A DNA stretch of 64,000 nucleotides, from assembly GCA_002269645.1 (NCBI GenBank), contig NIVC01003203.1, forward strand, positions 1 through 64,000, written 5' to 3'. Below are positions 4,086 through 55,004 of this stretch, piece after piece. A model generated the notes under the pieces. It ran no database searches. It saw nothing but the letters and a program-made list of their open reading frames with translations, and was not told the origin of the DNA. Source of the stretch: Macrostomum lignano. Lineage: Eukaryota. The translations under genes were made by a program, and so were the position numbers. Numbering within the stretch: the first letter of the stretch is position 1; the number at the start of each line of letters is the position of its first letter.

Positions 4086-5217
<1,132 letters not shown>

Positions 5218-7624: not shown

Positions 7625-7975
7625 CTTCTTAACTTAATTTATTGCATAACTGTCTTTACAGTGAATATTTGCACGTGACAAATAAACACCACAGAGTGAG
7701 ACTGCATAAGCATAGTCAAAAATATGCAAAATATACACGAAACTATCACGGGTGATGATGGATCAGACGTGACCACAAAACCATTAATAAAGAAAACATT
7801 TTGTACAGACACTATTTTTAACAGAGAACCGGCTGCGGGCGTCTCTTGGGACGGACGTAAAGCAGTAGCACTGTAAACTTGGTCAGTAAAACTAAATTTG
7901 ACAATACTTGTCAGCCTTTTGTCACAGACTTATTTTCTGGACTAAAAAGACACAACTCTCTGTGTCAGCCACTCA

Positions 7976-17471: not shown

Positions 17472-20400
17472 TCAGTACATTCTGCCGCCTTTCTCAAAGA
17501 ACATAAAGTCCTGGAATTGAAGTTTGTGTTTAATTATAAATTGCTTCTTTATTTAGTATAAAAATTTTCTTTATAATGACAATCACACCAATCAGCTGAG
17601 CCACCACACCAATCAGCTGAGCCACCACCCCAATCAGTTGAGCCACCACCCCAATCAGCTGGGCCACCACCCCAATCAGTTGAGCCACCACCCCAATCAG
17701 CTGAGCCACCACGCCAATCAGCTGAGCCACCACCCCAATCAGCTGGGCCACCACCCCAATCAGCTGGGCCACCACCCCAATCAGCTGGGCCACCACCCCA
17801 ATCAGCTGGGCCACCACCCCAATCAGCTGGGCCACCACCCCAATCAGCTGAGCCACCACCCCAATCAGCTGGGCCACCACCCCAATCAGCTGAGCCACCA
17901 CCCCAATCAGCTGAGCTGAACTCACAATTAAGAAACAAGCTCCAATGATGGTTGCTTTCACGTTTAAGTGCAAATCAATTGGAAATGTGATGCCAAAATT
18001 GTCGGCATCTGTGAAGTACTCCTGCATCAGGTTGGACCACTGGCGGGAGACTCGGCCCACCTCTTCACCATCGTGCGTGCGGACCTGATAGTTTTATTAT
18101 TTAAAGGCGCCACACATAAAATTATGGATCAACATGGTTTCCAAATGGCTTTTGAGTTTAAGCTCATAGCTCGTACGCCACAAAGCGAAAATTGATAAAC
18201 ACTTATGAGTCTGTACAGACAACCTAAACTACCATTGTCGAAACAAAGCTATAGAGACAAAGACAAAAATGCTCTTGCTGTTTTTGTTGCTGTTCTAAAA
18301 ATAAATGTGTAAAAACTGGATGATCGTCCAACTAAAACTGGTTTTTCGGGTATACAAATGTCTGCTGTCTGTAATTACTGATTGCAGGGTTGGAGGTGTT
18401 GCAGGGTTTGAGGTGTAGCAGGGTTAGGGTGTTGCAGGGTTCGAGTTGTTGCAGGGTTTGAGGTGTTGCAGGGTTTAAGGTGCTGCAGGATTTGAGGTGT
18501 TGCAGGGGTTGAGCTGTTGCAGGGTTTAAGGTGCTGCAGGATTTGAGGTGTTGCAGGGGTTGAGGTGTTGCAGGGTTTGAGGTGTTGCAGGATTTGAGGT
18601 GTTGCAGGGTTTGAGTTGTTGCAGAGTTTGAGGTGCTGCAGGATTTGAGGTGTTGCAGGGTTTGAGCTGTTGCAGGGTTTAAGGTGCTGCAGGATTTGAG
18701 GTGTTGCAGGGGTTGAGCTGTTGCGGGGTTTGAGGTGTTGCATGGTTTGAGGTGTTGCAGGAGTTGAGGTGTTGCGGGGTTTGAGGTGTTGCAGGGTTTG
18801 AGGTGTTGCAGGAGTTGAGCTGTTGCGGGGTTTGAGGTGCTGCAGGATTTGAGGTGTTGCAGGGGTTGAGCTGTTGCGGGGTTTGAGGTGTTGCATGGTT
18901 TGAGGTGTTGCAGGAGTTGAGGTGTTGCATGGTTTGAGGTGTTGCAGGAGTTGAGGTGTTGCAGTTTTGAGCTTTTGCAGGGGTTGAAGTGTTAAATTAA
19001 AAAGCCAGCATAGGAACCCACCGAGAAGGGAATATCGTCGCCCGGACAGTAGCAGTGGCAGTAATTCGGCCCGTCAATGCTGAGCACTTTGTCCCCAGCC
19101 GAGTCCAAAATCTCGTAGGTGGCCTCGCAGCGGCGGTGGATTTGTCTGACCTGGCCGACCAGCTGGCCGGGCGGGGCCTCAACCGTGACCAAGTCTTTGC
19201 AACAGTTGAGGCAGGACAGGCCCTGGTGGAGGCACATGCACCGGTAGGGCCTGGACACGTGGATCACCTCCTCTCCGCTGCTGTCCGTGATGTTCAACTC
19301 AAATGGTCGCGCCGCGCCGCAGCAGTTTCGAGCGACGCTGCTCGATTCTGAGGTGTTGCGAATGGAGGGTATTTGAAATGTCTTGGCTGTGAAAGATGGA
19401 GACAAACACTATCTGACCAATCTGATATGACTGATGACCAACACTAACTGACCAATTTGATATGACTGATGACCAACACTAACTGACCAATTTGATATGA
19501 TTGATGACCAAGACTAGCTTACCAATTTGATATGATTGATGACCAAGACTAGCTGACCAACTTGATAAGATTGATGACCAACACTAACTGACCAATTTGA
19601 TATGACTGATGACCAATACTAACTGACCAATTTAATAAGATTGATGACCAACACTAATGACCAATTTGATTGGATTGATGACCAACACTAACTGACCAAT
19701 TTGATATGACTGATGACCAATACTAACTGACCAATTTAATAAGATTGATGACCAACACTAATGACCAATTTGATTGGATTGATGACCAACACTAACTGAC
19801 CAATTTGATATGACTGATGACCAATACTAACTGACCAATTTAATAAGATTGATGACCAACACTAATGACCAATTTGATTGGATTGATGACCAACACTAAC
19901 TGACCAATTTGATATGACTGATGACCAATACTAACTGACCAATTTAATAAGATTGATGACCAACACTAATGACCAATTTGATCGGATTGATGACCAACAC
20001 TAACTGACCAATTTGATTGGATTGATGACGAACGCCAAAAGCCTAACCTACTATCAGACACACTTGATCCATAAAACCAGTCAGAAGTAACAAACAGCTT
20101 CATTACAAACTAGACTTACTCTCGTTGGCAAAGTAGATCGGCTGACCCATTGTGTTGAGCACAACGTATTGATTAGGCAGGTCCAGGCCAATCAGAACTG
20201 TCGATTTTGTAGCAATAGTTTTATTACTTAATAAATCACAATACTAAAAAAGTGTTTTTTTATCTTAGAAGCTTAAATTTGAGAGATGGCGTTAAGAGGT
20301 GGCTCGCCAATAACACGTCCGACTCTTGCGCAATTCCGTCCGCGTGCACGGAGATTAGCCTAGGGATTATCTTGCGATTCGATGCCCATGAGGGCCAACC

Positions 20401-20780
20401 TCCAAGGCACACAGAGTGTACACTGTCTGGTTCATAGAAAGTCAGGGCCGCTGTACACCCTGAGTGAGCCTGTATGTGCTCAGGGGTCAGCGTAATGCTG
20501 AAGAGCCCAAAGCCTCTTGGATTAAATAAACAACTAATCAATGCAGAGCCCAGTACTCACTCTCCATCACCTCCTTCTGCTGCTTGATGATAAGCTGGTC
20601 CACCTGCATGAGGTAGCGCAGGCCAGGCGGGTAGCCGCCAGGCGAGTCGGGCAGCGGCATCCACTCTTGCTTCGGCTGCTGCTCCTGCTGATAAGCTGAC
20701 TGACGTCTGCTGACTGGAGCATGGCTGCTTTCTTCTGGCTGCTGCTGCTGCTGCTGCTGCTGACGTTGCTGTTTTTGCAT
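17472..20780 (-). CDS. PLSCR: Phospholipid scramblase
   Basis: Exons 20780-20561, 20197-20120, 19347-19022, 18084-17926, 17510-17472, all GT-AG with consistent phases; motifs PPGLRYLMQVDQLIIKQ, RNCCGAARPF, EYFTDADNFGITFPIDL..KATIIGACFLIDFMFFE. Confidence 0.92.
17585..17915. repeat. 21-bp minisatellite, scramblase intron 4
   Basis: Unit GCCACCACCCCAATCAGCTGG/A. Confidence 0.95.
18385..18990. repeat. 18-bp minisatellite, scramblase intron 3
   Basis: Unit GGGTTTGAGGTGTTGCAG and variants. Confidence 0.93.
19410..20030. repeat. 35-bp minisatellite with 3-unit (about 103-bp) higher-order repeat, scramblase intron 2
   Basis: Unit GACCAACACTAACTGACCAATTTGATATGACTGAT; variant units recur at about 103-bp spacing. 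Confidence 0.9.
20270..20520 (+). mobile_element. SINE-like dispersed repeat, copy A
   Basis: Shares AGAGTGTACA..GAAAGTC.GGGCCG.TGTACACCCTG.GTGAGC.TGT.TGTGCTCAG with 21375-21456. Confidence 0.45.
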
Positions 20781-22265: not shown

Positions 22266-23746
22266 CATATACTGCATAGCTTTGCAAATATTTACAATAT
22301 ATATTTTCTGATAATTAGCAAACAGTCAACATCTTTTTTCTCCAGTAGCCATTACAGATGTATAGGTTTCCGAAGAGATATTCAGATAGGCATTTAGACA
22401 AATTAATCATTTGTAAATGTTGAAAAAATAAAATTTTCAATATGCAGAGGATAGTTTTAATTAAATGTTTGTCTATCTGTCACGGAACTAACAAATCCAT
22501 TAATTAAAAGTATAATTGTAATAAAAATTTCTCAAAATTACGCTTGCAAAGTGAGTTTTAATTCGCTACAAAAAAGCATCCTTAAAATAAAAAAGCCAAT
22601 AAAGCACTTCTAAACCCTTAAAACTCCTCGTAAAAGTTTTTAAAGAGGACTTCCCCTGACTAATCAATTATCAAACAGTTAAGAATCATAAAAACAATTA
22701 CATGTAATACCTAATTATTCGTCAATTTTAACAAAAACTAAATTGCGACGCTACAAAATTCTGCACCGCAAAAAATCTAAAGTGTTAAAAGAACAAAGAA
22801 CAAATGTAAAGAATGTTCCAGATATATATTTTAAGATGCTATTTGGTTTTGTTAAGGGGTTACGTTTTGTTTAAATAAAATAATAAAAATATAAACAATA
22901 CATAAATACGTTTTCTATGTCATAGGAAAAGCATCGTAGCGCTCGGATGAACTCTATTTAAAAGTACAGTAGCTAATTCTTAGAGAAATATTTCAGCAAC
23001 CTTATATTAACTTTTAGATATGAGAACAGTTTATTCTCTTTTGAAATTGTATGGCATAATAAAATGAAAAATTAAAACTGAAGTTGTACTCAAGATAATA
23101 AACTGAATAAATTTTGCTTACTGTTTTTTCCGTTGCTCGTATTAGTTATATATATGTCTCTGGTCAGCCAGCCTAACACAGTATAAAGAAGTCTATATTC
23201 TTTAATATGCATTTAAAACAGAAATGGACTAGAAGTATTAAATAAGTCCTTGATTGATTGTCATTATTAACTTTTTGTTATACTTTTTTTGTTTAAGCAG
23301 ATTTCGTCCCTTGAATAATCTGAGAAAAGAACGTTTTCGTGTAAAATATTTAATCGTTTGTTCGCATCCTAAAGACTGGCTCACACCTCCCTCAATTACG
23401 CCATTATGTTCCAGCGCAACGAAAAGTATGTACTTAATGAGCCTTTTAGTATGCTTATTAAACTACATGCTCTGAGCTCTGCCTATGTGATGAGTGATGA
23501 GTCATGGTATTTACTTATTCATTTTTTGTCATAAATTTATGTAACTGTAAACTGCTTTCAATTGCTTCAATAGCCACGACGCCACGAGTAAAAATGAAAG
23601 AGTCCAAAGTCCATAGAATTTCCACAGTCAACTAAGAGCGCACATTTCAACCATCTATTTGTCGAACAGCATTTCCAAAATAGAAGTTCCAAACAGCACA
23701 CAAGCCAGTTCGTAGCTCTAACGGCAACAAAATTCTAGCAACAGTC

Positions 23747-25071
23747 CTAGAACACCATCTCGTGCGGCTTCTGCCCGTTCCTCAAGCTGAACAGGCTTCT
23801 CATGTAGCTGGCCAGCATCTTGGCGTCCGGAGATGCTCGAATAGCCGTCATCACCTGCGAGTCCACCGCCTTCTGGTCCTCGCGCCTCTCGTCAACCAGC
23901 TGATAGGCCGACTGCGGCTTGGCGAACGGATCGGCTGAGCTGGGCTTGGCCCGCTTGGCCTGCAGCTGCTTGGCCCTGCCAGAGAGAGAGACAGTTTCAA
24001 TGCGTGCTAGCTTTGGGGATTTCCTGTTTGTTAGAACCCAGTCTTACCCGATGACTGCGCGTAGTCTTACCCACTGATCTTGTAGTCTAGCCCGAATGAC
24101 CCCGTAGTCTTACCCAATGACCCCGTAGTCTTACCCAATGACCCCGTAGTATTACTCAATGACCCCGTAGTCTTATCCAATTAATGACCCTGTAGTCTTA
24201 TCCAATTAATGACCCCGTAGTCTTTCCCAATGACTCGTAGTCTTACCACAGCCAGCCCAGACAGTATTCTTTCCTGATGAACATGCACTGTCTTCCCTGT
24301 ACATTTAGGTCCGTGGTCCTAACCAGACGTCAATTCAGTTTTCACGGAGAATCCTCAGCCCTCTCTAACTACCAGTGCTACAACAAAAAGCTACTTGACT
24401 ACAACGCGCGCTCGTATTGCTCACCGGCGGAAATAAGCGTCGTTGACTCTCTCCGGCAGGCTGACTCCGCTGATGTCGATTTGCGTCTTCGTAGCGATAA
24501 CGTAGCTCTGAGCAATGCGACGCAGAGGACAGCCGTTGAACTTCAACGGCCCGGTGACCAGCAGGAGGCCGCTGGACAGCTGGCGAAGGAAGACGACCCG
24601 CTTGCCGCGGTGCCGGCCAGCAAGGAGGATCAGCACCGTGCCAGGCGTGATGGAGGCCCTCAGACGCCGCTTGTGATCCTTGAAGCACTTGGTCGGCCGC
24701 GGCGGCGAGTAGCGATGCGGCACGCTGGTTGGCAGACTCCTCGGCGACCGCCGGTCCGGCACCAGACGCTTGCCACCGTTCTTCTCGCCGCCGATGACCT
24801 TCTCCGTCAGCTGCACCTTCGAGGCGGATGCGGCGGTGGCCGATTTTCCGCTGCTGCGGGCCAGCTTCTTCTTCAGCCGGTAGATGGCCTTGCGCTGGAA
24901 CATGCGCGCCCTGCTCAGCTTCATCAGCACGGTGCCGCTCAGGGCCTCGTTGCGGCTGCGTCCTTGCTTCGACGTGCTTGCTGATCCCTTTACTGACGTC
25001 TTTGTTGTAGTCTTTGTAGTTGTCTTTGTTGTAGAGACTGCGCTACCGCTGGCGCTGCCGCCGGCAGCTTG
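23747..25071 (-). CDS. RPL6: 60S ribosomal protein L6 (eL6) coding exons
   Basis: Exons 25071-24425 and 23975-23747 (CG|GTGAGC..CAG|G); motifs [69 protein letters not shown]. Confidence 0.93.
24040..24245. repeat. About 21-bp minisatellite, RPL6 last intron
   Basis: Unit GTAGTCTTACCCAATGACCCC and variants. Confidence 0.8.
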
Positions 25072-25114
25072 CTGAAATGTTTTTTGGGCAGGTTGTGACT
25101 TCCATGCAATTTAA

Positions 25115-26660
25115 TTGCAATGTGGTTTGAGTTGCTTGCAATTTGGTCTGACTCGATTGCAATATGATTTGACTCGATTGCAATTTGGTTTGACTCGATT
25201 GCAATTTGGTTTGACTCGATTGCAATTTGGTTTGACTCGATTGCAATTTGGTATGACTCGCTTGTAATTTGGTTTGACTCGATTGTAATTTGGTTTGACT
25301 TGATTGCAATTTGGTTTGACTCGATTGCAATTTGGTTTGACTCGCTTGTAATTCGGTTTGCTTCGATTGTAATTTGGTTTGACTAGATTGCAATTTGGTT
25401 TGATTCGATTGTAATTTGGTTTGACTCGATTGCAATTTGGTTTGATTCGATTGCAATTTCGTTTGATTCGATTGCAATTCGGTTTGCTTCGATTGTAATT
25501 TGGTTTGACTAGATTGCAATTTGGTTTGATTCGATTGTAATTTGGTTTGATTCGATTGCAATTTGGTTTGATTCGATTGTAATTTGGTTTGATTCAATTG
25601 CAATTTGGTTTGACTCGATTGCAATTTGGTTTGATTCGATTGTAATTTGGTTTGATTCGATTGCAATTTGGTTTGATTCGATTGTAATTTGGTTTGATTC
25701 GATTGCAATTCGGTTTGCTTCGATTGTATTTTGGTTTGACTAGATTGCAATTTGGTTTGATTCGATTGTAATTTGGTTTGCTTCGATTGTAATTTGGTTT
25801 GATTCGATTGCAATTTGGTTTGATTCGATTGTAATTTGGTTTGATTCAATTGCAATTTGGTTTGACTCGATTGCAATTTGGTTTGATTCGATTGTAATTT
25901 GGTTTGATTCGATTGTAATTTGGTTTGATTCGATTGTAATTTCGTTTGATTCGATTGCAATTTGGTTTGCTTCGATTGTAATTTGGTTTGACTAGATTGC
26001 AATTTGGTTTGATTCGATTGTAATTTGGTTTGACTCGATTGCAATTTGGTTTGATTCGATTGCAATTTCGTTTGATTCGATTGCAATTCGGTTTGCTTCG
26101 ATTGTAATTTGGTTTGACTAGATTGCAATTTGGTTTGATTCGATTGTAATTTGGTTTGATTCGATTGCAATTTGGTTTGATTCGATTGTAATTTGGTTTG
26201 ATTCAATTGCAATTTGGTTTGACTCGATTGCAATTTGGTTTGATTCGATTGTAATTTGGTTTGATTCGATTGCAATTTGGTTTGATTCGATTGTAATTTG
26301 GTTTGATTCGATTGCAATTCGGTTTGCTTCGATTGTATTTTGGTTTGACTAGATTGCAATTTGGTTTGATTCGATTGCAATTTGGTTTGCTTCGATTGTA
26401 ATTTGGTTTGATTCGATTGCAATTTGGTTTGATTCGATTGTAATTTGGTTTGATTCAATTGCAATTTCGTTTGATTCGATTGCAATTCGGTTTGCTTCGA
26501 TTGTAATTTGGTTTGACTAGATTGCAATTTGGTTTGATTCGATTGTAATTTGGTTTGATTCGATTGCAATTCGGTTTGACTCGATTGCAATTTGGTTTGA
26601 CTAGATTGCAATTTGGTTTGACTCGATTGCAATTTGGTTTGACTCGATTGCAATTTGGTG
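25115..26660. repeat. 21-bp minisatellite, about 1.55 kb, between EF-hand and RPL6 exons
   Basis: Unit GATTCGATTGCAATTTGGTTT; rare variant GTATTTT recurs at 25726 and 26335 (609 bp = 29 units). Confidence 0.97.
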
Positions 26661-26881
26661 GACTTGCATGCAATTAGGTTTCATTCAATAACAAACTGTG
26701 TTAATTTAATTACAATTTCCTATTTCATTTCAAATTGGCTTGCTGCACACGAATTTTGTTGGTTTGTTGTTATTAGACAAAGATCATTTTCCCAACAATC
26801 GTCAACAAAAACCTTCGAAATTAGAAAATTTGAAAAGTTCTATGTAGTTTTGTTGCAGAGCATCAAATTAGCCAACCTCAC

Positions 26882-28192
26882 CTTGGTTTGCTGCACCTTG
26901 TGCTTCTCAACGACTTCCTGTTTGGGAATTAGCCCAAGGGTGTTGCAGTACTCGTCGTAGGTGATTGTGCCGCTCTCGTCCTCATCGAACAGGTTCAGCC
27001 ACTTTTTCACGAACGTGTCTTTGTAGTTCATCTTCTTGCAGTAGCTTGAAATGCCAAATTTGTGAGCGATTTGACTGTTACATTCATTCTGTCTTTACTC
27101 ATGCTCTCACAGTCCTGCATGCTAGCTGAAAAATCCCCAGCAACTTACTCTTCCAGCTCCTCGACCGAGATCTCACCGGAGTGGTCGGTGTCGATGGCCT
27201 GAAACGCCTGATGAAAGTCCATGCCTGGCTCCTGCGCGCAAAAGTATTGCGGTTCGGCATGTTATGTCAGTGAAATTTGAGCGTAAATGTTACTGGCTTT
27301 TGATCTGTTAGTGGTGTGCTGTCTGCTCTGACCGTGAACTGTGTTTGATCTGTCAGTGGTGTGCTGTCTGCTCTGACCGTGACTGTGTTTGATCTGTCAG
27401 TGGTGTGCTGTCTGCTCTGACCGTGACTGTGTTTGATCTGTCAGTCAGTGGTGTGCTGTCTGCTCTGACCGTGACTGTGTTTGATCTGTCAGTCAGTGGT
27501 GTGCTGTCTGCTCTGACCGTGACTGTGTTTGATCTGTCAGTCAGTGGTGTGCTGTCTGCTCTGACCGTGACTGTGTTTGATCTGTCAGTGGTGTGCTGTC
27601 TGCTCTGACCGTGACTGTGTTTGATCTGTCAGTCAGTGGTGTGCTGTCTGCTCTGACCGTGACTGTGTTTGATCTGTCAGTGGTGTGCTGTCTGCTCTGA
27701 CCGTGAGCTGCGTTTGATCTGTCAGTGGTGTGCTGTCTGCTCTGACCGTGACTGTGTTTGATCTGTCAGTGGTGTGCTGTCTGCTCTGACCGTGACTGTG
27801 TTTGATCTGTCAGTGCCAGTGGTGTGCTGTCTGCTCTGACCGTGACTGTGTTTGATCTGTCAGTGGTGTGCTGTCTGCTCTGACCGTGACTGTGTTTGAT
27901 CTGTCAGTGCCAGTGGTGTGCTGTCTGCTCTGACCGTGACTGTGTTTGATCTGTCAGTGGTGTGCTGTCTGCTCTGACCGTGACTGTGTTTGATCTGTCA
28001 GTGGTGTGCTGTCTGCTCTGACCGTGACTGTGTTTGATCTGTCAGTGCCAGTGGTGTGCTGTCTGCTCTGACCGTGACTGTGTTTGATCTGTCAGTGGTG
28101 TGCTGTCTGCTCTGACCGTGACTGTGTTTGATCTGTTTATCCAAGACAAAAACAGATGAAAATCCGAATGGAAAAACCCAGATGCTCACCAT
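26882..28192 (-). CDS. Two-EF-hand calcium-binding module (TAL/calmodulin-like N-domain); apparently the 5' exons of the RPL6 gene
   Basis: ATG|GTGAGC at 28192-28190, exons 27231-27149 and 27044-26882; loops DTDHSGEISVEE and DEDESGTITYDE; ends AAG|GTGAGG in phase 0. Confidence 0.8.
27300..28137. repeat. About 44-bp minisatellite, EF-hand intron 1
   Basis: Unit GTGGTGTGCTGTCTGCTCTGACCGTGACTGTGTTTGATCTGTCA. Confidence 0.96.
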
Positions 28193-29480
28193 ATCGCCGT
28201 CAGTTTGTTAAACAAACGCAAAGTCTTTCCACAAAGCTCTGCTCTGTTTTACTCTGCTAAAAACTGTCCACTCTCCAGAAGGACTCAAATTTTCAGCTCT
28301 CTGTTCTGATTAATAACCGCCAAGCAAGCGTTTGGACTCGATCTACCACCTAGCCGGCCTTCTCAGCTATTTGGAATTTCGAAGAACGACGAAGAAATGA
28401 AGAAATGCGCTCACCAATGGTTGGCTCCTCCTCTCAATCTCTTCTCTCCTAGCCTTTTGAGTCGAGCCCCACCCCAACCCCCGAGCTCCATTGTCAGCTC
28501 TCCCTGCTCAGGCCTGCCCTGCCGAGCCCCCGCTCGGGCCCCAGCCAGCCTCCCCGCTCTCTCCTCTCCTCTCCGAGCTGTAGTCAGTTTTCTCTCGCTT
28601 CAACCAACCCCTGCTGGCCCTACGGCGGCTCTTTTGCTTTGCTTACAGCAGAGAAACACAAGGGTGCTGAGAGGTCCTCCTAACATGGGCAACTGCAGTA
28701 GAAGGGCGCTACCACTCGGCTTTCTTAGCAATGAGCTGGAGGCCGGTAAGAATCGCATATTTGTCGCTTCGCCAGTGCATTTAGTGTGTTTCCCCGTCAT
28801 TATTTTCCCTATGAAGGTTAAAGCGTTTAGTAGGCCGACTGTACGTCCTCGATGATTGTTGGAATTACTGAAAAACTAACGCATATTTTAAACCTCATAA
28901 GGTGGCAAAATATTTCGGTAGATTGAAGAGCATGACAGACGAAAGAACTGACTCAGAAAAACAAATTTGGGGGGGGGGGTAGTCTCTTCTGCTTCGAGTT
29001 TAAGGCCATATAATTTGCCATTCTGAATTTAGTCTAGCCCAGGTCTAGTCTAGTCTAGAGAGAGGAGGAAGAACACGAAATGCGCATTTTTATGTTTCTG
29101 AATAGCTGTGCGTGCAGTCCTGCCTGTCGTACAAATGAGTATCTTGCATTTATACGTACCAGAGTGTGTACACGTTGTGACGTGGTGCCCATTAGCTTCG
29201 AATTTCATTGAGTCCGACCCGTCCCAATTATTCTATTCGCTTAAAATATTACTTCTTTCAGTATTAGTAGCTCTGTTTAGGTAATTTTACCACCCAAAAT
29301 TGATTGAGATTAACGCGAAACAACGACAGCAGCGCCATCTCGACTAAATAGAGAAAAGGAAACTCCCTCCAGTCTCTCGTGTGGCTGTGTATTGAACTAA
29401 AAATTTGTGGGAAAAAAAGTAGTTTTTTTATTTCCTGTCAAGAAAAAATTGAGTCACGTGTGACTTCACAGTCAAACGGT

Positions 29481-32400
29481 TCAGGTCGGAAACATGACCA
29501 GGTCGATGCGGAGATTCCTCTTACGGATGCCGTTGCATCGTTCGGTAACCAAGGCAACCGTGGCAGCGTTGCCGCCGGTGTAATTAGGCGCGCTAAAGAC
29601 GGTGACGCAACGCTTGAGGTAGTGCCACTCGTAGCCGGCCGGCTTGGTCTCGTGGCCGCGGATCAGGCAGGCCAAGTTGAACTGCTGCATGGTCTTCTCG
29701 ATGGCGTCGAAGCCGAACGTGTACGCAATCTGGCGCTCCGAGTTGAAGTGCCAGCCTCGGAGGGACGTCCAGTTGGCGTCGTTCGGGCTCATGTAGGGCA
29801 TGCCGTGGTGCATCGGGTCGGACCAGAGCAGGTCGGACAGCACGAAATCGTAGGCGGAGTGGTTCAGCAGGCTTAGGGAGCGCTGCGTCTCTCGGCTGCT
29901 CGACACGAATCCGGAGGAGCCGACTTGGACCGGCCGGCGCACCTGCGGATCCGGCAGGGTGACGTTGCTGGACTGGGCTGCAGGAACCACTTGAGTTTTG
30001 GACTGGGCTGCAGGAACCACTTGAGTTTTGGACTGGGCTGCAGGGACCACTTGAGTTTTGGACTGGGCTGCAGGGACCACTTGAGTTTTGGACTGGGCTG
30101 CAGGGACCACTTGAGTTTTGGACTGGGCTGCAGGGACCACTTGAGTTTTGGACTGGGCTGCAGGGACCACTTGAGTTTTGGACTGGGCCATGGACCCCAA
30201 GGATTGCTAGACTGAGCTCAAACACCACTGGATTGCTAGACTGAGCTCAAATATCACTGGATTGCTAGACTGAGCTCAAACACCACTGGATTGCTAGACT
30301 GAGCTCAAATATCACTGGATTGCTAGACTGAGCTCAAACACCACTGGATTGCTAGACTGAGCTCAAATATCACTGGATTGCTAGACTGAGCTCAAACACC
30401 ACTGGATTGCTAGACTGAGCTCAAATATCACTGGTTTGCTAGACTGAGCTCAAATATCACTGGTTTGCTAGACTGAGCTCAAATATCACTGGTTTGCTAG
30501 ACTGAGCTCAAATATCACTGGTTTGCTAGACTGAGCTCAAATATCACTGGATTGCTAGACTGAGCTCAAATATCACTGGATTGCTAGACTGAGCTCAAAC
30601 ATCACTGGATTGCTAGACTGAGCTCAAATATCACTGGTTTGCTAGACTGAGCTCAAATATCACTGGATTGCTAGACTGAGCTCAAACATCACTGGATTGC
30701 TAGACTGAGCTCAAACATGGGCTGCATGGATTGCTAGACTGAGCTCAAACATCACTGGTTTGCTAGACTGAACTCAAACATCACTGGATTGCTAGACTGA
30801 GCTCAAACATCACTGGATTGCTAGACTGAGCTCAAACATCACTGGATTGCTAGACTGACCTAGCACTTGGCAGGGGAAATTTTCACCTTCCAGTTGAGAT
30901 AGGAGGTCAGCGCCCCAGGCGCCAGCTGGGCCTTGTGCCGCTGACAGACGGTGCCCAGCGGGCAGCGCTCGCATTGGCGCTGGCAGGTGCGGCAGGCGGA
31001 CAGGGCGGGGCTGAGGCCGCCGTGCAGGCAGAGAATCCGCTGCTCGAGCACGCAGGCCACGGGCAGGTAGTCGAACACGTGGATGAACATGCGCCAAAGC
31101 CCGTGCGCCAGGCGACGGTGGCCCGCGTTGACGGCATTCTCTGCGGTATTCAAGCGGCTTTTTGAATAAGATTCTAAGAAATCATTTTCAGTGTTTCATA
31201 ATTGTACTGTCTAGTGCTGATCTAGGGGATATCTTACGCATAGGTATATACGACTCCTGTAATTAGAAATTTCTTATATTGGAGTAGTATACAATCTTAA
31301 AAAGGATTAAGAGGATCTCTGCTTGGGGATCTGAGATCTTAAAGTGACCTGAGGTTCCTATTCGGGATCTGGGATCTTCTTGTCTGAGATTTCCAATTCG
31401 GGATTTGGGATCTTGCTGGTCTGAGATTTCCCATTCGGGATCTGGGATCTTACTGATCTGAGATTTCCAATTTGGGATCTGGTATCTTACTGATCTGAGA
31501 TTTCCCATTCGGGATCTGGGATCTGGCCTTCCAAAGAACACCCACCGTGGAATCGCTCCTCAATCTCAGCGTAGAACCCGTAGGTCTCGTGCAGTTCAAA
31601 GTCCTCGTGGTTGCCGCGCAGGATGAACACGCGGGAGGGATAGCGCAGCTTGTAGTAGAGGAACAGGCACACCGTCTCCAGCTGCTGCGGCCCCCTGTCC
31701 ACCATGTCGCCTGCGGGCGTCGGCGATGAGAGCGGAGTGAAGAAATCCCACCGCTGCTTCTACGGAATTATCCCACTGACTCTTCTGCTCAATGCCACTG
31801 ACTCTCCTGCTCAATGTCACTGACTCTCCTGCTCAATGTCACTGACTCTCCTGCTCAATGCCACTGACTCTCCTGCTCAATGTCACTGACTCTTCTGCTC
31901 AATGCCACTGACTCTCCTGCTCAATGTCACTGACTCTCCTGCTCAATGTCACTGACTCTCCTGCTCAATGTCACTGACTCTCCTGCTCAATGTCACTGAC
32001 TCTCCTGCTCAATATCACTGACTCTCCTGCTCAATGCCACTGACTCTCCTGCTCAATATCACTGACTCTCCTGCTCAATGCCACTGACTCTCCTGCTCAA
32101 TGTCACTGCCTTTCCTGCTCAATGGCGCTGACTTTCGGGTTCAATCTACGGTAAAACTAGCCAACCCATTGAAAAAGTTAACAAGAATCGCTATAAAGAG
32201 TCACTTCAGGCAGCTCACAAGTGACTCTATCGACTCTTGGGCGATTCTTGTGACTTTTTAACAACTTTAACGACTGAAATGCAACGGAAACAACAGTTAA
32301 GTCACGAGCGCATCACGCTCGAAAAATCTTCCAAGAGCTAGAGTCGTTTTATGCAACGCCCCAGAGTCGTAGACGATAAAAATGCTTCAAATAGACTTTT

Positions 32401-36625: not shown

Positions 36626-45174
<8,549 letters not shown>

Positions 45175-47702: not shown

Positions 47703-49702
47703 GCTGCAGATAACGACAGCAGCAGCGGCGGTGGCGGCGTCAGTCACAGCTGGAGCGAGCTGCTGACGCCAGGTGAACAGTCCGCCCTGTCAGCCTGTCT
47801 GGCCCGCAGCGGCTGTCAGTGCTTGGCCAGCGCCGTGGCCCGGCTGTACCGCGGCCAGGAGACGCCGCCGCCAAGCCGCTGGGTGCCGCTGGCCACCGGC
47901 GTCGTCTGCTTTGTCCGCCGCCCCGGCCATCGATTCGCCGTGCAGTTCTACGACATGGACAACATCCGGCAGGAGCCGGCGCTAGACCAGGACCTCTATC
48001 CGGGCATGCAGTACCACAGCGCCTACGACTTCTTTCATCACTTCGAGGCGGCTAATTGTGTTGTCGGTTTTTGTTTTGCCGACTGCGACACCGGCTTGGA
48101 CGAGGGGGCTAGGCTGGGCCAGTGCGTCAAGCTGCAGGCACTGAAGATGGGCCCGGCTAGGCAAGTAGCTGAGCCAGCTCTGGCCCCAGCCTCGCGGCCT
48201 ATTCGCAGCGGCGGTGGCGGCAGCGGGTTTGGTCGGCGGCTGTCTTTGAGGAGGTCGAAGTCGAGTGTGAATGCGGATAGCAAGTTGGTGAGAGCAGATT
48301 TTTACTGCGATAACTGCTTGGTTTAGTGTCTGGAGCTCGCGCTGTTGATTGCCTTCCATAAGAATCGCCCCACCCTCCATAAGAATCGCCCCCACCCTCC
48401 ATAAGAATCGCCCCTACCCTCCATAAGAATCGCCCCCGCCCTCCATAAGAATCGCCCCCACCCTCCATAAGAATCGCCCCCACCCTCCATAAGAATCGCC
48501 CCTACCCTCCATAAGAATCGCCCCACCCTCCATAAGAATCACCCCACCCTCCATAAGAATCGCCCTACCCTCCATAAGAATCGCCCCACCCTCCATAAGA
48601 ATCGCCCCACCCTCCATAAAAATCGCCCCTCCATAAGAATCGCCCCACCCTCCATAAGAATCGCCCCCGCCCTCCATAAGAATCGCCCCCGCCCTCCATA
48701 AGAATCGCCCCCACCCTCCATAAGAATCGCCCCCGCCCTCCATAAGAATCGCCCCCACCCTTCATAAGAATCTCCCCACCCTCCATAAGAATCGCCCCCA
48801 TCCTCCATAAGAATCGCCCCCACCCTCCATAAGAATCTCCCCACCCTCCATAAGAATCGCCCCCACCCTCCATAAGAATCGCCCCCACCCTCCATAAGAA
48901 TCGCCCCCACCCTCCATAAGAATCGCCCCCGCCCTCCATAAGAATCGCCCCCGCCCTCCATAAGAATCGCCCCCACCCTCCATAATAATCGCCCTCCGCC
49001 GTTCCCAGCGCCACCATCGGCCAACCTCTGAGGCCACCAGCGCAGCGCCGGCACCGCTGCAGTCCTCTGCAGCCGCTCCGTCAACCGCCACCCCGACGAC
49101 AGCGTCGGCAGCGCCCCATTCAGCCGTCCACCATCCGCAGCACCGTCGCCTCACGCGCGGCCGCCTCCGCCGTCAAGACATCGGCGCTCCGCAGAACTTT
49201 CGCCACGTGCAGCACGCCGGAGTCGACACCCTGGCCGACAACGCGGCCAGAATCGACCAGTTCGACTGGCAGTCGGACCCGGTGCTGCGCCAGCTGTTTG
49301 GCAGCCTGGACGCCGACCTGCAAGCGAAGGTGGCGGCCAGTCCGACCGGGCCGCAGGCTCTGAACAAATTCGCTGACAGACACGGCGGCATTCAGAATCT
49401 GATGGAGCTGGCTAAATCACAGGGCTATACTGCTGGCGTGGAGACTGATGCGTCAAAGGTACAGTTCAATGTCAAATCACTTTTGTTTTGTGGAATGTGG
49501 GTCATGTGTATCTTCTCGTTTAAAAAGCAGATGGCTACGTTAGTCAGTTAGTTGATTAGTTAGTTATTTGGTTAGTTAGTTGATTAGTTAGTTAGTTATT
49601 TGGTTAGTTAGTTAGTTAGTTAGTCAGTTAGTTAGTCAGTTAGTTAGTTAGTCAGTTAGTTAGTTAGTTAGTCAGTTAGTTGATTAGTTAGTTAGTTATT
49701 TG

Positions 49703-49740
<38 letters not shown>

Positions 49741-49997
49741 CATTTAGTTGATTAGTTAGTTAGTTATTTGGTTAGTTAGTTGATTAGTTAGTTAGTTATT
49801 TGGTTAGTTAGTTGATTAGTTAGTTAGTTAGTTAGTCAGTTAGTTAGTTAGTCAGTTAGTTGGTTAGTTAGTTAGTTAGTTAGTCAGTTAGTTAGTCAGT
49901 TAGTTAGTTAGTTAGTTAGTCAGTTAGTTAGTCAATTATTTATTTGGTTAGTTAGTTAGTTAGTTAGTCATTTAGTTGATTAGTTAGTTAGTCAGTG

Positions 49998-50028
<31 letters not shown>

Positions 50029-50058
50029 CAGTTAGTTGATTAGTTAGTTAGTTATTTG

Positions 50059-50100
<42 letters not shown>

Positions 50101-50189
50101 CATTTAGTTGATTAGTTAGTTAGTCAGTGAGTTAGTTAGTTAGTTGGTTAGTTCGTTAATTAATTAGTTAGTTAGTCAGTTAGTTAGTC

Positions 50190-50220
<31 letters not shown>

Positions 50221-50285
50221 CAGTTAGTTAGTCAATTATTTATTTGGTTAGTTAGTTAGTTAGTTAGTTAGTCAGTGAGTTAGTC

Positions 50286-50320
<35 letters not shown>

Positions 50321-50346
50321 CAGTTAGTTAGTCAATTAGTTATTTG

Positions 50347-50380
<34 letters not shown>

Positions 50381-50385
50381 CAGTG

Positions 50386-50424
<39 letters not shown>

Positions 50425-50605
50425 CAGTTAGTTGATTAGTTAGTTAGTCAGTGAGTTAGTTAGTTAGTTGGTTAGTTCGTTAATTAATTAGTTAGTTAGT
50501 CAGTTAGTTAGTCAGTTAGTTAGTTAGTTAGTTAGTTAGTCAGTTAGTTAGTCAATTATTTATTTGGTTAGTTAGTTAGTTAGTTAGTTAGTCAGTGAGT
50601 TAGTC

Positions 50606-50636
<31 letters not shown>

Positions 50637-50662
50637 CAGTTAGTTAGTCAATTAGTTATTTG

Positions 50663-50696
<34 letters not shown>

Positions 50697-50701
50697 CAGT
50701 G

Positions 50702-50732
<31 letters not shown>

Positions 50733-50762
50733 CAGTTAGTTGATTAGTTAGTTAGTTATTTG

Positions 50763-50800
<38 letters not shown>

Positions 50801-51057
50801 CATTTAGTTGATTAGTTAGTTAGTTATTTGGTTAGTTAGTTGATTAGTTAGTTAGTTATTTGGTTAGTTAGTTGATTAGTTAGTTAGTTAGTTAGTCAGT
50901 TAGTTAGTTAGTCAGTTAGTTGGTTAGTTAGTTAGTTAGTTAGTCAGTTAGTTAGTCAGTTAGTTAGTTAGTTAGTTAGTCAGTTAGTTAGTCAATTATT
51001 TATTTGGTTAGTTAGTTAGTTAGTTAGTCATTTAGTTGATTAGTTAGTTAGTCAGTG

Positions 51058-51088
<31 letters not shown>

Positions 51089-51118
51089 CAGTTAGTTGAT
51101 TAGTTAGTTAGTTATTTG

Positions 51119-51156
<38 letters not shown>

Positions 51157-51337
51157 CATTTAGTTGATTAGTTAGTTAGTCAGTGAGTTAGTTAGTTAGT
51201 TGGTTAGTTCGTTAATTAATTAGTTAGTTAGTCAGTTAGTTAGTCAGTTAGTTAGTTAGTTAGTTAGTTAGTCAGTTAGTTAGTCAATTATTTATTTGGT
51301 TAGTTAGTTAGTTAGTTAGTTAGTCAGTGAGTTAGTC

Positions 51338-51372
<35 letters not shown>

Positions 51373-51398
51373 CAGTTAGTTAGTCAATTAGTTATTTG

Positions 51399-51432
<34 letters not shown>

Positions 51433-51437
51433 CAGTG

Positions 51438-51468
<31 letters not shown>

Positions 51469-51497
51469 CAGTTAGTTGATTAGTTAGTTAGTCAGTG

Positions 51498-51540
<43 letters not shown>

Positions 51541-51954
51541 CAGTTAGTTAGTCAGTTAGTTAGTTAGTCAGTTAGTTGGTTAGTTAGTTAGTTAGTTAGT
51601 CAGTTAGTTAGTCAGTTAGTTAGTTAGTTAGTTAGTCAGTTAGTTAGTCAATTATTTATTTGGTTAGTTAGTTAGTTAGTTAGTCATTTAGTTGATTAGT
51701 TAGTTAGTCAGTGAGTTAGTTAGTTAGTCAGTTAGTTGATTAGTTAGTTAGTTATTTGGTTAGTTAGTTGATTAGTTAGTTAGTTATTTGGTTAGTTAGT
51801 TGATTAGTTAGTTAGTTAGTTAGTCAGTTAGTTAGTTAGTCAGTTAGTTGGTTAGTTAGTTAGTTAGTTAGTCAGTTAGTTAGTCAGTTAGTTGATTAGT
51901 TAGTTAGTTAGTTAGTCAGTTAGTTAGTCAGTTAGTTAGTTAGTTAGTTAGTTG

Positions 51955-51989
<35 letters not shown>

Positions 51990-52114
51990 GATTAGTTAGT
52001 TAGTTATTTGGTTAGTTAGTTAGTCAGTTAGTTAGTCAGTTAGTTAGTCAGTTAGTTAGTCAGTTAGTTATTTGGTTAGTTAGTTAGTCAGTTAGTTAGT
52101 CAGTTAGTTATTTG

Positions 52115-52155
<41 letters not shown>

Positions 52156-52341
52156 CTATTTAGTTAGTCAGTTAGTTATTTAGTTAGTTAGTCAGTTAGT
52201 TATTTAGTTAGTTAGTTGGTTAGTTCGTTAATTAATTAGTTAGTTAGTCAGTTAGTTAGTCAGTTAGTTAGTTAGTTAGTTAGTTAGTCAGTTAGTTAGT
52301 CAATTATTTATTTGGTTAGTTAGTTAGTTAGTTAGTTAGTC

Positions 52342-52376
<35 letters not shown>

Positions 52377-52437
52377 CAGTTAGTTAGTCAATTAGTTATT
52401 TGGTTAGTTAGTTAGTTAGTTAGTTAGTTAGTCAGTG

Positions 52438-52480
<43 letters not shown>

Positions 52481-53257
52481 CAGTTAGTTGATTAGTTAGT
52501 TAGTCAGTGAGTTAGTTAGTTAGTTAGTCAGTTAGTTAGTCAGTTAGTTAGTTAGTCAGTTAGTTGGTTAGTTAGTTAGTTAGTTAGTCAGTTAGTTAGT
52601 CAGTTAGTTAGTTAGTTAGTTAGTCAGTTAGTTAGTCAATTATTTATTTGGTTAGTTAGTTAGTTAGTTAGTCATTTAGTTGATTAGTTAGTTAGTCAGT
52701 GAGTTAGTTAGTTAGTCAGTTAGTTGATTAGTTAGTTAGTTATTTGGTTAGTTAGTTGATTAGTTAGTTAGTTATTTGGTTAGTTAGTTGATTAGTTAGT
52801 TAGTTAGTTAGTCAGTTAGTTAGTTAGTCAGTTAGTTGGTTAGTTAGTTAGTTAGTTAGTCAGTTAGTTAGTCAGTTAGTTGATTAGTTAGTTAGTTAGT
52901 TAGTCAGTTAGTTAGTCAGTTAGTTAGTTAGTTAGTTAGTCAGTTAGTTAGTCAGTTAGTTGGTTAGTTAGTTAGTTAGTTAGTCAGTTAGTTAGTCAGT
53001 TAGTTAGTTAGTTAGTTAGTCAGTTAGTTGATTAGTTAGTTAGTTATTTGGTTAGTTAGTTAGTTAGTTAGTTAGTCATTTAGTTGATTAGTTAGTTAGT
53101 CAGTGAGTTAGTTAGTTAGTTGGTTAGTTCGTTAATTAATTAGTTAGTTAGTCAGTTAGTTAGTCAGTTAGTTAGTTAGTTAGTTAGTTAGTCAGTTAGT
53201 TAGTCAATTATTTATTTGGTTAGTTAGTTAGTTAGTTAGTTAGTCAGTGAGTTAGTC

Positions 53258-53292
<35 letters not shown>

Positions 53293-53318
53293 CAGTTAGT
53301 TAGTCAATTAGTTATTTG

Positions 53319-53352
<34 letters not shown>

Positions 53353-53357
53353 CAGTG

Positions 53358-53396
<39 letters not shown>

Positions 53397-53425
53397 CAGT
53401 TAGTTGATTAGTTAGTTAGTCAGTG

Positions 53426-53462
<37 letters not shown>

Positions 53463-53555
53463 CTCAGTTAGTTGGTTAGTTAGTTAATTAGTTAGTTAGT
53501 TAGTTAGTTAGTCAGTCAGTTAGTTAGTCAGTTAGTTGGTTAGTTAGTTAATTAA

Positions 53556-53586
<31 letters not shown>

Positions 53587-53605
53587 ATTAGTTAGTTAGT
53601 TAGTC

Positions 53606-53636
<31 letters not shown>

Positions 53637-53686
53637 CAGTTAGTTAGTTAGTTAGTTAGTTAGTTGATTAGTTAGTTAGTTATTTG

Positions 53687-53728
<42 letters not shown>

Positions 53729-53882
53729 CAGTTAGTTAGTTAGTTAGTTAGTTAGTTGATTAGTTAGTTAGTTATTTGGTTAGTTAGTTAGTCAGTTAGT
53801 TAGTCAGTTAGTTAGTCAGTTAGTTAGTCAGTTAGTTATTTGGTTAGTTAGTTAGTCAGTTAGTTAGTCAGTTAGTTATTTG

Positions 53883-53923
<41 letters not shown>

Positions 53924-54021
53924 CTATTTAGTTAGTCAGTTAGTTATTTAGTTAGTTAGTCAGTTAGTTAGTTAGTCAGTTAGTTAGTTAGTTAGTTGGT
54001 TAGTGAGTTAGTTAGTTAGTC

Positions 54022-54061
<40 letters not shown>

Positions 54062-54082
54062 GATTAGTTAGTTAGTTATTTG

Positions 54083-54148
<66 letters not shown>

Positions 54149-54198
54149 CAGTTAGTTAGTTAGTTAGTTAGTCAGTTAGTTAGTCAGTTAGTTATTTG

Positions 54199-54239
<41 letters not shown>

Positions 54240-54877: not shown

Positions 54878-55004
54878 TCTGATTGAATCTCTGCACCAGC
54901 GGTCTGGCCAATGTGCTGACTACTTATCAAGTAGTATCTTTAGAAATTTTAGTGCTTTATTTACCATTGGGAATGATTGTCGGATCGATTCCTCCTATGG
55001 GGAA

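Follow-up and report, generated by a model that had tools for sequence, protein, structure and literature searches.

An EF-hand module joined to ribosomal protein eL6 may give ribosomes of the flatworm Macrostomum lignano a built-in calcium sensor

Introduction

To our knowledge, core ribosomal proteins almost never gain folded signalling domains, the well-known exceptions being the ubiquitin-like fusions, and we know of no canonical eL6 (RPL6) that carries EF hands. In other animals, the N-terminal extension of eL6 is variable and Lys-rich, and is usually missing from modelled ribosome chains. Among the calcium-binding modules, the EF-hand module of the TAL/CaBP proteins has drawn study as a target for drugs and vaccines that is specific to parasites. 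For work on regeneration, M. lignano offers a tractable model in which transgenesis and RNAi are available. The AUGs of flatworm spliced leaders (SLs) are reportedly able to initiate translation, as Cheng et al. are said to have described in J Biol Chem in 2006. The M. lignano SL, CGGTCTCTTACTGCGAAGACTCAATTTATTGCATG, has an ATG at its 3' end, and its acceptors follow the motif [T/C]TNCAG (PMC8629364).

Here we analysed a stretch of 64,000 nucleotides of M. lignano DNA (contig NIVC01003203.1; hereafter, the window), whose minus strand encodes an EF-hand module in frame with eL6. We consider it likely that this is one gene and not two, a cis-spliced fusion that originated once, that is apparently the sole eL6 of M. 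lignano and that we propose to be a ribosomal Ca2+ tether. Its gene structure, conservation, selective constraint and intact Ca2+ ligands are documented below. Literature searches on EF hands with eL6, on L6 in Macrostomum and on the gene ids found no paper describing an EF-hand-eL6 fusion.

Results

Reading splice sites and frames on the minus strand from 28192 to 23747, we obtained five GT-AG exons that join into a single ORF of 374 amino acids, in which a pair of EF hands is followed by a disordered linker of Lys, Thr and Ser and then by the whole of eL6. The 5'UTR lies upstream of 28192 and probably extends to roughly 28330-28420; the 5'UTRs align weakly. Exon 0 ends with the start codon (28190-28192; donor ATG/GTGAGC, with the slash marking the exon boundary). 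In-frame splicing from this ATG to 27231 yields M-EPG-MDFH, and the identical ATG GAG CCC GGC ATG GAT stands in frame in the cDNA of a relative (L001); from MDFH... (ATG at 27222), the joined frame is open to the TAG at 23749-23747. Intron 0 (27232-28189, 958 nt) contains a 44/94-bp tandem array (27299-28136). Exon 1 (27149-27231; donor GA/GTAAGT) encodes EPG, then MDFHQAFQAIDTDHSGEISVEELE(D), and includes EF-hand 1 with the Ca2+ loop DTDHSGEISVEE (27192-27157). After intron 1 (27045-27148, 104 nt), exon 2 (26882-27044) encodes EF-hand 2, with the loop DEDESGTITYDE (26986-26951), and the exit helix PKQEVVEKHKVQQTK.

The original prediction placed the end of exon 2 at ...ACC AAG/GTGAGG (last base 26882) and the next coding acceptor at TTTCAG/CAA (first base 25071), both in phase 0, with no ATG ahead of the SRN motif in the eL6 exon, and our reading of the sequence confirmed all of this. 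The intervening intron 2 (25072-26881, 1810 nt) holds a 21-bp minisatellite (25114-26659, 73.6 copies), leaving ~264 nt of unique sequence, and an ATTAAA-like element is found in its unique 5' part. Exon 3 (24425-25071) encodes the disordered linker, the putative rRNA-binding N-terminal motif of eL6 and the eL6 core to ..AYFRR, and ends in a phase-2 donor (CG/GTGAGC). Intron 3 (23976-24424, 449 nt), with a 21-bp array at 24040-24247, is followed by exon 4 (23747-23975), which encodes the eL6 C-terminal part (...GQKPHEMVF) and the TAG; the 3'UTR extends below 23747. Minisatellites thus fill three of the four introns, and at least 18 such arrays lie within the window, most introns having one. 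Read-through beyond the 26882 donor adds 13 codons (VRLANLMLCNKTT) before a stop at ~26840, and the frame of the eL6 exon, followed back beyond the 25071 acceptor, meets a stop after 14 codons.

Pfam profiles expected of the predicted protein were recovered for both halves: EF-hand_7 (PF13499; 53.2 bits against a cut-off of 30, E = 3.8e-14), EF-hand_1 (PF00036; 51.5 bits against 25.4, in two stretches) and Ribosomal_L6e (PF01159; 116.8 bits against 21.4, E = 8.4e-34, over the full profile 1-111). Ribosomal_L6e_N scored 20.8 bits, under the Pfam cut-off of 25. The SRN...SRxxMF/Y..KA.YK motif could be aligned in every column with the eL6 of annelids and brachiopods, and also with the rabbit protein, starting at residue 28; against the mammalian eL6 of solved 80S structures, the alignment (E = 3.6e-73) began near residue 28 and reached the C-terminus, and many deposited eL6 chains begin ~40 residues into the protein. 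Directly after the linker, the eL6 N-terminal helix has a basic amphipathic, calmodulin-target-like segment.

Both EF-hand loops are canonical, with 12 residues, ligands at positions 1, 3, 5 and 12 and Gly at position 6. They match DxDxSGxIxxxE, a pattern kept in 8 of 9 fusions; the second loop of the P0193 fusion is degenerate. With intact ligands in both loops, the EF pair is predicted to bind Ca2+. The pair spans ~65 a.a. plus a short helix, and is followed by 35-40 a.a. of fast-evolving, disordered linker rich in Lys, Thr and Ser. An AF2 model of the related protein P0001 (7-sequence alignment; poor overall, with a mean pLDDT of 54, and serving for the order/disorder pattern only) shows the EF domain as folded, with a pLDDT of 75-81, and the linker at low confidence, residues 84-124 being below 50. 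The EF module is under tighter constraint than the eL6 body: dN was 0.05-0.07 and dN/dS about 0.025-0.03 in the EF part, against 0.15-0.25 and about 0.2 in the eL6 body, and dN reached 0.4-0.9 in the linker.

The EF pair is related to those of the TAL proteins, as had been supposed. It is of the same type as the pairs of the TAL/CaBP proteins (Sm22.6/SmTAL1, CsTegu20.8 and FhCaBP4), its nearest relatives being TAL-type EF+DLC proteins; in those of M. lignano (P0123/P0124), the EF portion is 60% identical to it, and CsTegu20.8 (5x2e, E = 5.6e-12, residues 3-70) and FhCaBP4 (9voa) stood high among the single-domain PDB matches, covering residues 3-75. A short helix after the EF hands is also common to the fusion and the TAL-type proteins (EKHKVQQ and EKVQVQ, respectively). 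Whereas TAL/CaBP proteins continue into a DLC-like domain (PF01221), the fusion protein has no Dynein_light match and its partner there is a ribosomal protein; a tblastn search with a Macrostomum EF+DLC protein (P0123) found no match to its DLC part in the 64-kb window, in agreement with the predicted lack of a DLC-like exon. The proposed origin by simple exon shuffling at existing TAL introns did not hold, since the intron positions in the EF region differ: the TAL-like gene of M. lignano has them after ..EKFVQ and ..TEYM, and the fusion gene after ..EELE and ..QQTK.

The in-frame EF-hand-eL6 architecture is borne out by spliced cDNA contigs from relatives as well as by a paralog annotated in M. 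lignano, all with the same junction. P0001 is represented by four independent 1.2-1.35-kb Logan contigs (SRR28338163-66) and P0002 by two contigs, and the window protein is 76% and 70% identical to them, respectively. In these cDNA-size contigs from related species, the EF-hand+eL6 ORF passes without a gap through the site of the 26882/25071 junction (...KHKVYQAQ/QAAGGG..., compared with ...KHKVQQTK/QAAGGS... in the window), and the contigs have ordinary 5'UTRs with no spliced leader. The paralog (P0003, BOX15_Mlig004334g1; 419 a.a., EF-hand+eL6), from GCA_002269645.1 (annotated in Mlig_3_7), has its EF exon 74 bp from the next linker exon, with introns that are likewise repeat-filled. A scramblase gene lies downstream of both the window locus and the P0003 locus, and the exons are colinear. 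In addition, a UniProt model derived from a different assembly (P0057) joins the same EF exon to the same eL6 exons; apart from this mis-merged model, the exact window protein was absent from the protein collections searched. UniProt A0A1I8FLI5 merges a phosphatase gene with the EF-hand-eL6 gene. Phases match by chance in one case out of three, but the homologous fused cDNAs and proteins make the observation more than chance. At the window locus itself, the 26882 to 25071 splice is predicted from the spliced cDNAs of relatives and the paralog.

A search of 5.8 billion proteins returned eight fusion clusters, and more fused representatives turned up in an exhaustive HMMER search. The runs with fusions outside Macrostomum were SRR28338163-66, SRR30276804/12, ERR9851084, ERR1719229 and SRR14039982, and the sole UniParc id among the cluster members was UPI00060F96F1. 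The eL6 moieties of all fusions formed one clade (NJ bootstrap 95%). Since the EF module is present in all of the M. lignano eL6 models seen (P0003, P0057, P0126 and the frameshifted P0217 and P0218) and no canonical eL6 for M. lignano was found among the proteins present in databases, EF-hand-eL6 seems to be the normal eL6 of this lineage, apparently its only form in M. lignano. The idea of a paralog for specialised ribosomes thus finds no support: each of the two divergent paralogs is fused, and fusion is older than their duplication and clade-wide. It probably arose once, before the duplication into the two M. lignano paralogs, and appears to have been retained across a clade that includes Macrostomum. 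An EF-less eL6 (P0202) is nested inside the fusion clade, indicating that at least one lineage or isoform can do without the EF module. P0147, another candidate EF-less eL6, was rejected as an exon-level ORF of a genomic contig, starting at a splice acceptor.

Discussion

In the mechanism that we propose, the eL6 moiety would assemble as usual on the solvent side of the 60S subunit, with its N-terminal extension replaced by a flexible tether bearing a Ca2+-binding EF-hand pair. Ca2+ binding would open the hydrophobic cleft of the pair, as in TAL/CaBP and calmodulin-type pairs, and the opened pair could then engage a partner (a cytoskeletal, membrane or translation factor, or the basic amphipathic helix), making the location or activity of the ribosome Ca2+-sensitive. 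We infer that the module is retained on mature ribosomes, that it binds Ca2+ and that it has such a partner. Tentatively, we extend this to a broader possibility, for which the case is still well short of even: the cytoplasmic 60S subunits of Macrostomum, and of a wider clade that is probably one of flatworms, might all carry an eL6-tethered TAL-type EF-hand Ca2+ sensor, by which Ca2+ would act directly on ribosome anchoring, localisation or translational activity, as a constitutive, lineage-wide property and not that of a specialised paralog.

The EF module might instead be a built-in chaperone or expression tag that shields the basic eL6 N-terminal helix in synthesis and nuclear import and is later released, clipped or inert. 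The ubiquitin-eL40, ubiquitin-eS31 and FUBI-eS30 fusions, as well as the dedicated ribosomal-protein chaperones, are precedents for this, and the layout would suit such a role: at the N-terminus a small domain that folds, then a flexible linker, then a ribosomal protein whose basic amphipathic segment comes immediately after the linker. We nevertheless regard it as unlikely, because both loops keep their canonical Ca2+ ligands over deep divergence, which a mere solubility tag would not need, and because the junction has no recognisable conserved cleavage signal, the linker being hypervariable.

Somewhat more doubtful is a dual output, in which SL trans-splicing at 25071, alongside the fusion mRNA, would supply an EF-less eL6 to ribosomes and leave the fusion as a second, possibly extra-ribosomal or regulatory isoform. 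The phase-0 acceptor TTTCAG at 25071 fits the SL-acceptor motif and the SL ends in AUG, so an SL-eL6 mRNA would begin M-QAAGG..., and the repeat-adjusted spacing of ~264 nt between the EF and eL6 exons is operon-like. However, no junction-starting EF-less ORF was found in any fusion-bearing species among the 5.8 billion proteins, which include those from the same RNA-seq assemblies; in six independent runs, the contigs cross the junction unbroken, which speaks against any abundant branching at this site; and the strong constraint on the EF module shows that the fused form matters. The SL sequence itself had one chance match in the window, at 7633 with two mismatches; neither an SL gene nor a genomic SL copy beside the eL6 exon was found.

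Two separate genes in an SL-resolved operon, the alternative named in the original prediction, would comprise a 92-a.a. EF-hand protein ending at ~26840 and an SL-initiated eL6, with the fusion being a coincidence of phase. Such a coincidence has a chance of one in three, operons are many in M. lignano, an ATTAAA-like element is located in the unique 5' part of intron 2, and the spacing and the TTTCAG acceptor fit the operon and SL-acceptor statistics of this species. As the sole explanation, a pure SL operon is nevertheless very unlikely: several species have precisely spliced fused cDNAs, the paralog is fused as well, with just 74 bp between its EF exon and the coding exon that follows, residues at the junction are conserved, and the read-through tail is conserved in no homologue. 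What survives of this alternative is a possible minor, SL-trans-spliced isoform encoding eL6 only. That the assembly went wrong across the 21-bp array, or that this copy is a decaying pseudogene, is hardly credible: a long near-perfect minisatellite does separate the two halves, and none of the proteins that the databases derive from transcripts is identical to that of the window copy, but the same order and architecture recur at an independent paralogous locus and in cDNAs, the different assembly behind P0057 joins the same EF and eL6 exons, arrays of this kind (at least 18 in 64 kb) are common in the introns of this genome, no splice site is disrupted, the frame stays open over its 374 codons, and dN/dS against orthologue-like cDNAs is 0.03-0.2.

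Taken as a single cis-spliced gene, the locus joins a canonical Ca2+-binding module to eL6, long kept through at least one ancient duplication and with apparently no unfused copy left, and M. lignano ribosomes may therefore have a built-in calcium sensor. Should mature ribosomes carry the module, it would constitute a directly testable second-messenger input to the ribosome. The TAL/CaBP module is also shown to occur in a free-living flatworm, reused in a housekeeping protein. For gene models, the A0A1I8FLI5 entry is corrected, and such loci should not be split into an "EF-hand protein" and "RPL6".

Among known systems, the SL operons of M. lignano (PMC8629364) have a similar spacing and acceptor motif, and the 3' AUG of the SL is in frame with the eL6 exon; unlike in such operons, the mRNAs of relatives cis-splice both halves into one ORF, whose upstream part has no conserved stop. 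The plant and apicomplexan CDPKs, whose EF domains are among the best PDB matches, likewise place an EF-hand module in cis to its presumed target, but they have four EF hands, whereas EF-eL6 has two, with a structural, non-enzymatic partner and no autoinhibitory junction. As in Ub-eL40, Ub-eS31 and FUBI-eS30, a small self-folding N-terminal domain is in frame with a ribosomal protein and long conserved; those domains are beta-grasp folds with a Gly-Gly cleavage site, in contrast to the EF-hand pair and long disordered linker of EF-eL6, which lacks a conserved cleavage motif. Finally, the fusion shares with canonical eL6 the complete body and the C-terminus, and probably also the N-terminal SRN...SRxRMF..KA.Y motif. 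Canonical eL6 proteins have lineage-specific, variable N-terminal extensions (e.g., the long Lys/Pro-rich ones of P0023 and P0196), whereas the extension of the fusion is not low-complexity sequence but a domain of two EF hands, folded and strongly conserved, that is held by a flexible tether.

Predicted structure of the EF-eL6 gene

The exons of the EF-eL6 gene were rebuilt from the minus-strand reading of positions 23500-28500. Exon 0 ends at 28190 with an ATG as its last codon (28192-28190), followed by the donor GTGAGC, and the subsequent intron 0 (28189-27232) consists almost entirely of a 44/94-bp tandem array. Exon 1 (27231-27149), which translates as EPG-MDFHQAFQAIDTDHSGEISVEELE, is separated by the 104-nt intron 1 (27148-27045) from exon 2 (27044-26882), which encodes the second EF hand. 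As in the original prediction, exon 2 ends with a phase-0 donor (ACC AAG/GTGAGG, at 26882), and exon 3 (25071-24425) opens with a phase-0 coding acceptor (TTTCAG/CAA, at 25071) in a frame that stays open into eL6; the intervening intron 2 (26881-25072) comprises 73.6 copies of a 21-bp unit and about 264 nt of unique sequence. After intron 3 (24424-23976, 449 nt), exon 4 (23975-23747) terminates with TAG. Pyrimidine-rich tracts such as CATTTCTTCATTTCTTCGTCGTTCTTC lie 5' of the EF exons, at 28370-28420 (minus strand) in the window and at the 5' ends of the contigs L006 and L009, and look like the 5'TOP elements found in mRNAs for ribosomal proteins. If they are 5'TOP-like, expression of the entire fusion would be controlled from ahead of the EF module, in the manner of a ribosomal-protein gene.

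The joined exons give 374 codons without interruption. The profile check of the predicted protein returned both expected domains: an EF-hand pair in residues 1-79 (EF-hand_7, 3.8e-14), a module that includes the peptide WLNLFDEDESGTITYDEYCNTLGLIPK, and Ribosomal_L6e in the remainder (8.4e-34), with L6e_N below threshold. A stop codon lies in frame just 5' of the exon 3 acceptor, and read-through from the EF donor (26882) reaches a stop after 13 codons. The earlier observations that the eL6 exon has no ATG 5' of the SRN motif and that no DLC (dynein-light-chain)-like exon is present anywhere within the 64-kb window also hold. Since a phase match alone is a 1-in-3 event, outside evidence was needed for the fusion.

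Fused cDNAs and constraint on the EF module

With the eL6 part as a query, several proteins bearing EF-hand Pfam domains scored above all ordinary eL6 proteins. These fused relatives begin with MDFH.AF..ID.D.SGEI... and then run directly into eL6. The closest, P0001, shares 76% identity with the window protein and was found on four independent contigs of mRNA size (1.24-1.35 kb) from four sequencing runs; P0002 is 70% identical and was found on two contigs. The alignment is gap-free at the exon 2/exon 3 boundary (window, ...EKHKVQQTK/; relative, ...EKHKVYQAQ/QAAGGGSGAT). The cDNA L001 carries ATG GAG CCC GGC ATG GAT, an M-EPG-M start, and the same start arises in the window from the splice 28190 to 27231. 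These cDNAs, continuous at the junction, and an annotated M. lignano paralog of the same architecture bear out the in-frame fusion first proposed and support the fusion interpretation of the window gene. Judged from sequence, the EF-eL6 fusion is real and conserved.

The window CDS was compared with the two closest cDNAs by the Nei-Gojobori method. The EF module gave a dN of 0.05-0.07 and a dN/dS of ~0.025, with synonymous sites saturated; the eL6 body gave 0.15-0.25 and ~0.2, respectively; and the linker gave a dN of 0.44-0.9, with dS saturated and dN/dS not calculable. The EF module is the protein's most constrained part. Both EF loops are canonical (DTDHSGEISVEE and DEDESGTITYDE), and the DxDxSGxIxxxE pattern is kept in both loops in 8 of 9 fusions; in P0193, the second loop is degenerate. 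AF2, run on a shallow alignment, folded the EF domain and its exit helix with confidence, gave low confidence to the linker (residues 84-124) and resolved the eL6 part poorly.

Distribution, origin and unfused forms

A search of 5.8 billion proteins with a profile built from seven fusions placed eight fusion clusters on top, with ordinary eL6 of other phyla coming immediately after; the same fusion, for which the original prediction had recommended a search, is present in other species. HMMER, run exhaustively over 1.84 billion cluster representatives, brought in a UniParc entry, P0193, and two frameshifted models of M. lignano type, P0217 and P0218. The sources of the fusions include the Tara Oceans metatranscriptome run ERR1719229 and several JGI metatranscriptomes. 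In a neighbor-joining tree of the eL6 part, which included annelid, mollusc, brachiopod, nemertean, bryozoan, priapulid and arthropod eL6, all of the fusions fell into one clade (95% bootstrap), which fits a single origin, with the long branches as a caveat. The clade also takes in P0147 (an exon fragment) and P0202. The latter, encoded on a 948-nt contig from a JGI metatranscriptome, is an eL6 that lacks EF hands and has an N-terminal extension of another kind; it is the sister of the fused P0135 (56% identity). From its position, the fusion clade must include an unfused form: either its lineage lost the EF module secondarily, or P0202 is an unfused paralog or isoform there.

In one species, P0020, P0021 and P0337 (L005, L013) differ only by 0, 4 or 48 inserted residues located exactly after the EF module (following ..AYKSKS), the longest being a VKPVDQKPKD.TSAAP repeat, a pattern that looks like alternative use of linker exons at this conserved junction. 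In L013, the sequence extends ~280 nt beyond the poly(A) signal and enters a second ORF.

All of the M. lignano eL6 models recovered (P0003, P0057, P0126, P0217 and P0218) carry the EF module, and a canonical M. lignano eL6 was not found among the proteins searched, though it was expected to rank near the top. The idea of a specialised eL6 paralog was not upheld by these results.

A second M. lignano copy

The assembly GCA_002269645.1 holds a second gene, BOX15_Mlig004334g1 (P0003, 419 a.a.; locus L008), with 57% identity and the same architecture as the window gene. Its exons map in the order EF, linker, eL6; the linker exon lies only 74 bp 3' of the EF exon, and its larger introns are likewise minisatellite-filled. 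A phospholipid scramblase gene with colinear exons lies downstream of both EF-eL6 loci (in the window, 17920-20690, minus strand, e.g. ORF 18992-19405; PF03803, 1.7e-24), with 53-87% amino-acid identity per exon between the window and L008, indicating that the loci are ancient duplicated segments. The fusion is older than the duplication that gave the two loci. Over ~140 consecutive residues, the window protein matches the Macrostomum lignano UniProt entry A0A1I8FLI5 (P0057) at 100% identity, which identifies the window as M. lignano DNA; the entry is a faulty model that merges an upstream PPP-phosphatase exon with EF exon 1 and with eL6 exons that are frameshifted. The PPP-family Ser/Thr phosphatase exon (29481-30200, minus strand) is the immediate upstream neighbour of the EF-eL6 gene; Pfam found no match on its raw ORF because this is mostly translated minisatellite.

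Discussion

The window protein has a complete eL6 part, which can be aligned to the mammalian eL6 seen in solved 80S structures, starting near residue 28 and extending to the C-terminus. In animal eL6, the Lys-rich N-terminal extension is flexible and faces solvent at the back of the 60S subunit, in agreement with the many deposited eL6 chains that start ~40 residues in. The most economical reading, which we infer in three steps, is that the eL6 moiety would assemble normally, a 35-90-residue tether would hold the EF pair off the subunit surface, and the EF pair, once Ca2+-bound, would engage a partner. Possibly, the EF module is instead a built-in chaperone that shields the basic N-terminal helix before assembly, perhaps with no role in the mature ribosome.

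The locus could also have a dual output, in which the acceptor at 25071 additionally takes a spliced leader (SL) to give M-QAAGG...eL6. ATG forms the 3' end of the M. lignano SL, and [T/C]TNCAG is the motif preferred at its acceptors (PMC8629364), so the phase-0 TTTCAG acceptor could receive it. However, protein searches traced no SL-eL6 product, and no EF-less ORF beginning at the junction in any fusion-bearing species, although short-read assemblies recover minor SL isoforms poorly. A two-gene operon alone is very unlikely, as the relatives' cDNAs read through the junction and the L001 5'UTR is ordinary sequence, not a spliced leader. An assembly artefact is also very unlikely: the window is extremely rich in minisatellites, with at least 18 arrays built of 12-54-bp units, including a (GACA)n array (4089-5216), a 4.9-kb GTTA-type array (49539-54401) and others at 36756-38059 and 55002-56521, and every intron longer than ~400 bp in the gene and its paralog carries one, so the 21-bp array is ordinary for an intron here and no sign of misassembly. 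Numerous spurious long ORFs stem from the arrays, as do strong local skews in GC and AT.

Full-text searches of the literature gave no description of an EF-hand-eL6 protein; the architecture sits in database entries labelled 'hypothetical protein' or 'eL6'. As its sequence reads, EF-eL6 is a ribosomal protein to which a lineage-specific N-terminal part has been added, and this part is a conserved, predicted second-messenger-binding domain. To our knowledge, the addition of such a domain to a core ribosomal protein has no described precedent.

The closest proteins to the EF module are M. lignano P0123 and P0124 (60% identity in the EF part), and PDB matches over the whole module include CsTegu20.8 (5x2e) and FhCaBP4 (9voa). 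The exon-shuffling detail of the original prediction did not stand, since the introns of the M. lignano TAL-like gene occupy positions other than those of the fusion gene, which argues against straightforward shuffling at an intron already in place. The TAL/CaBP proteins of parasitic flatworms combine an EF pair with a DLC domain; the window protein has a similar EF pair but lacks the DLC domain, and thus falls outside the TAL family. P0123 and P0124, encoded at L010 (M. lignano NIVC01000282.1, 3001-6736), have the same architecture as the TAL/CaBP proteins, with a DLC domain (Dynein_light) at a Pfam value of 1.1e-20. In PMC4300400 and PMC12347358, this architecture is described as restricted to parasitic flatworms or trematodes; the free-living flatworm M. 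lignano encodes an EF pair joined to Dynein_light.
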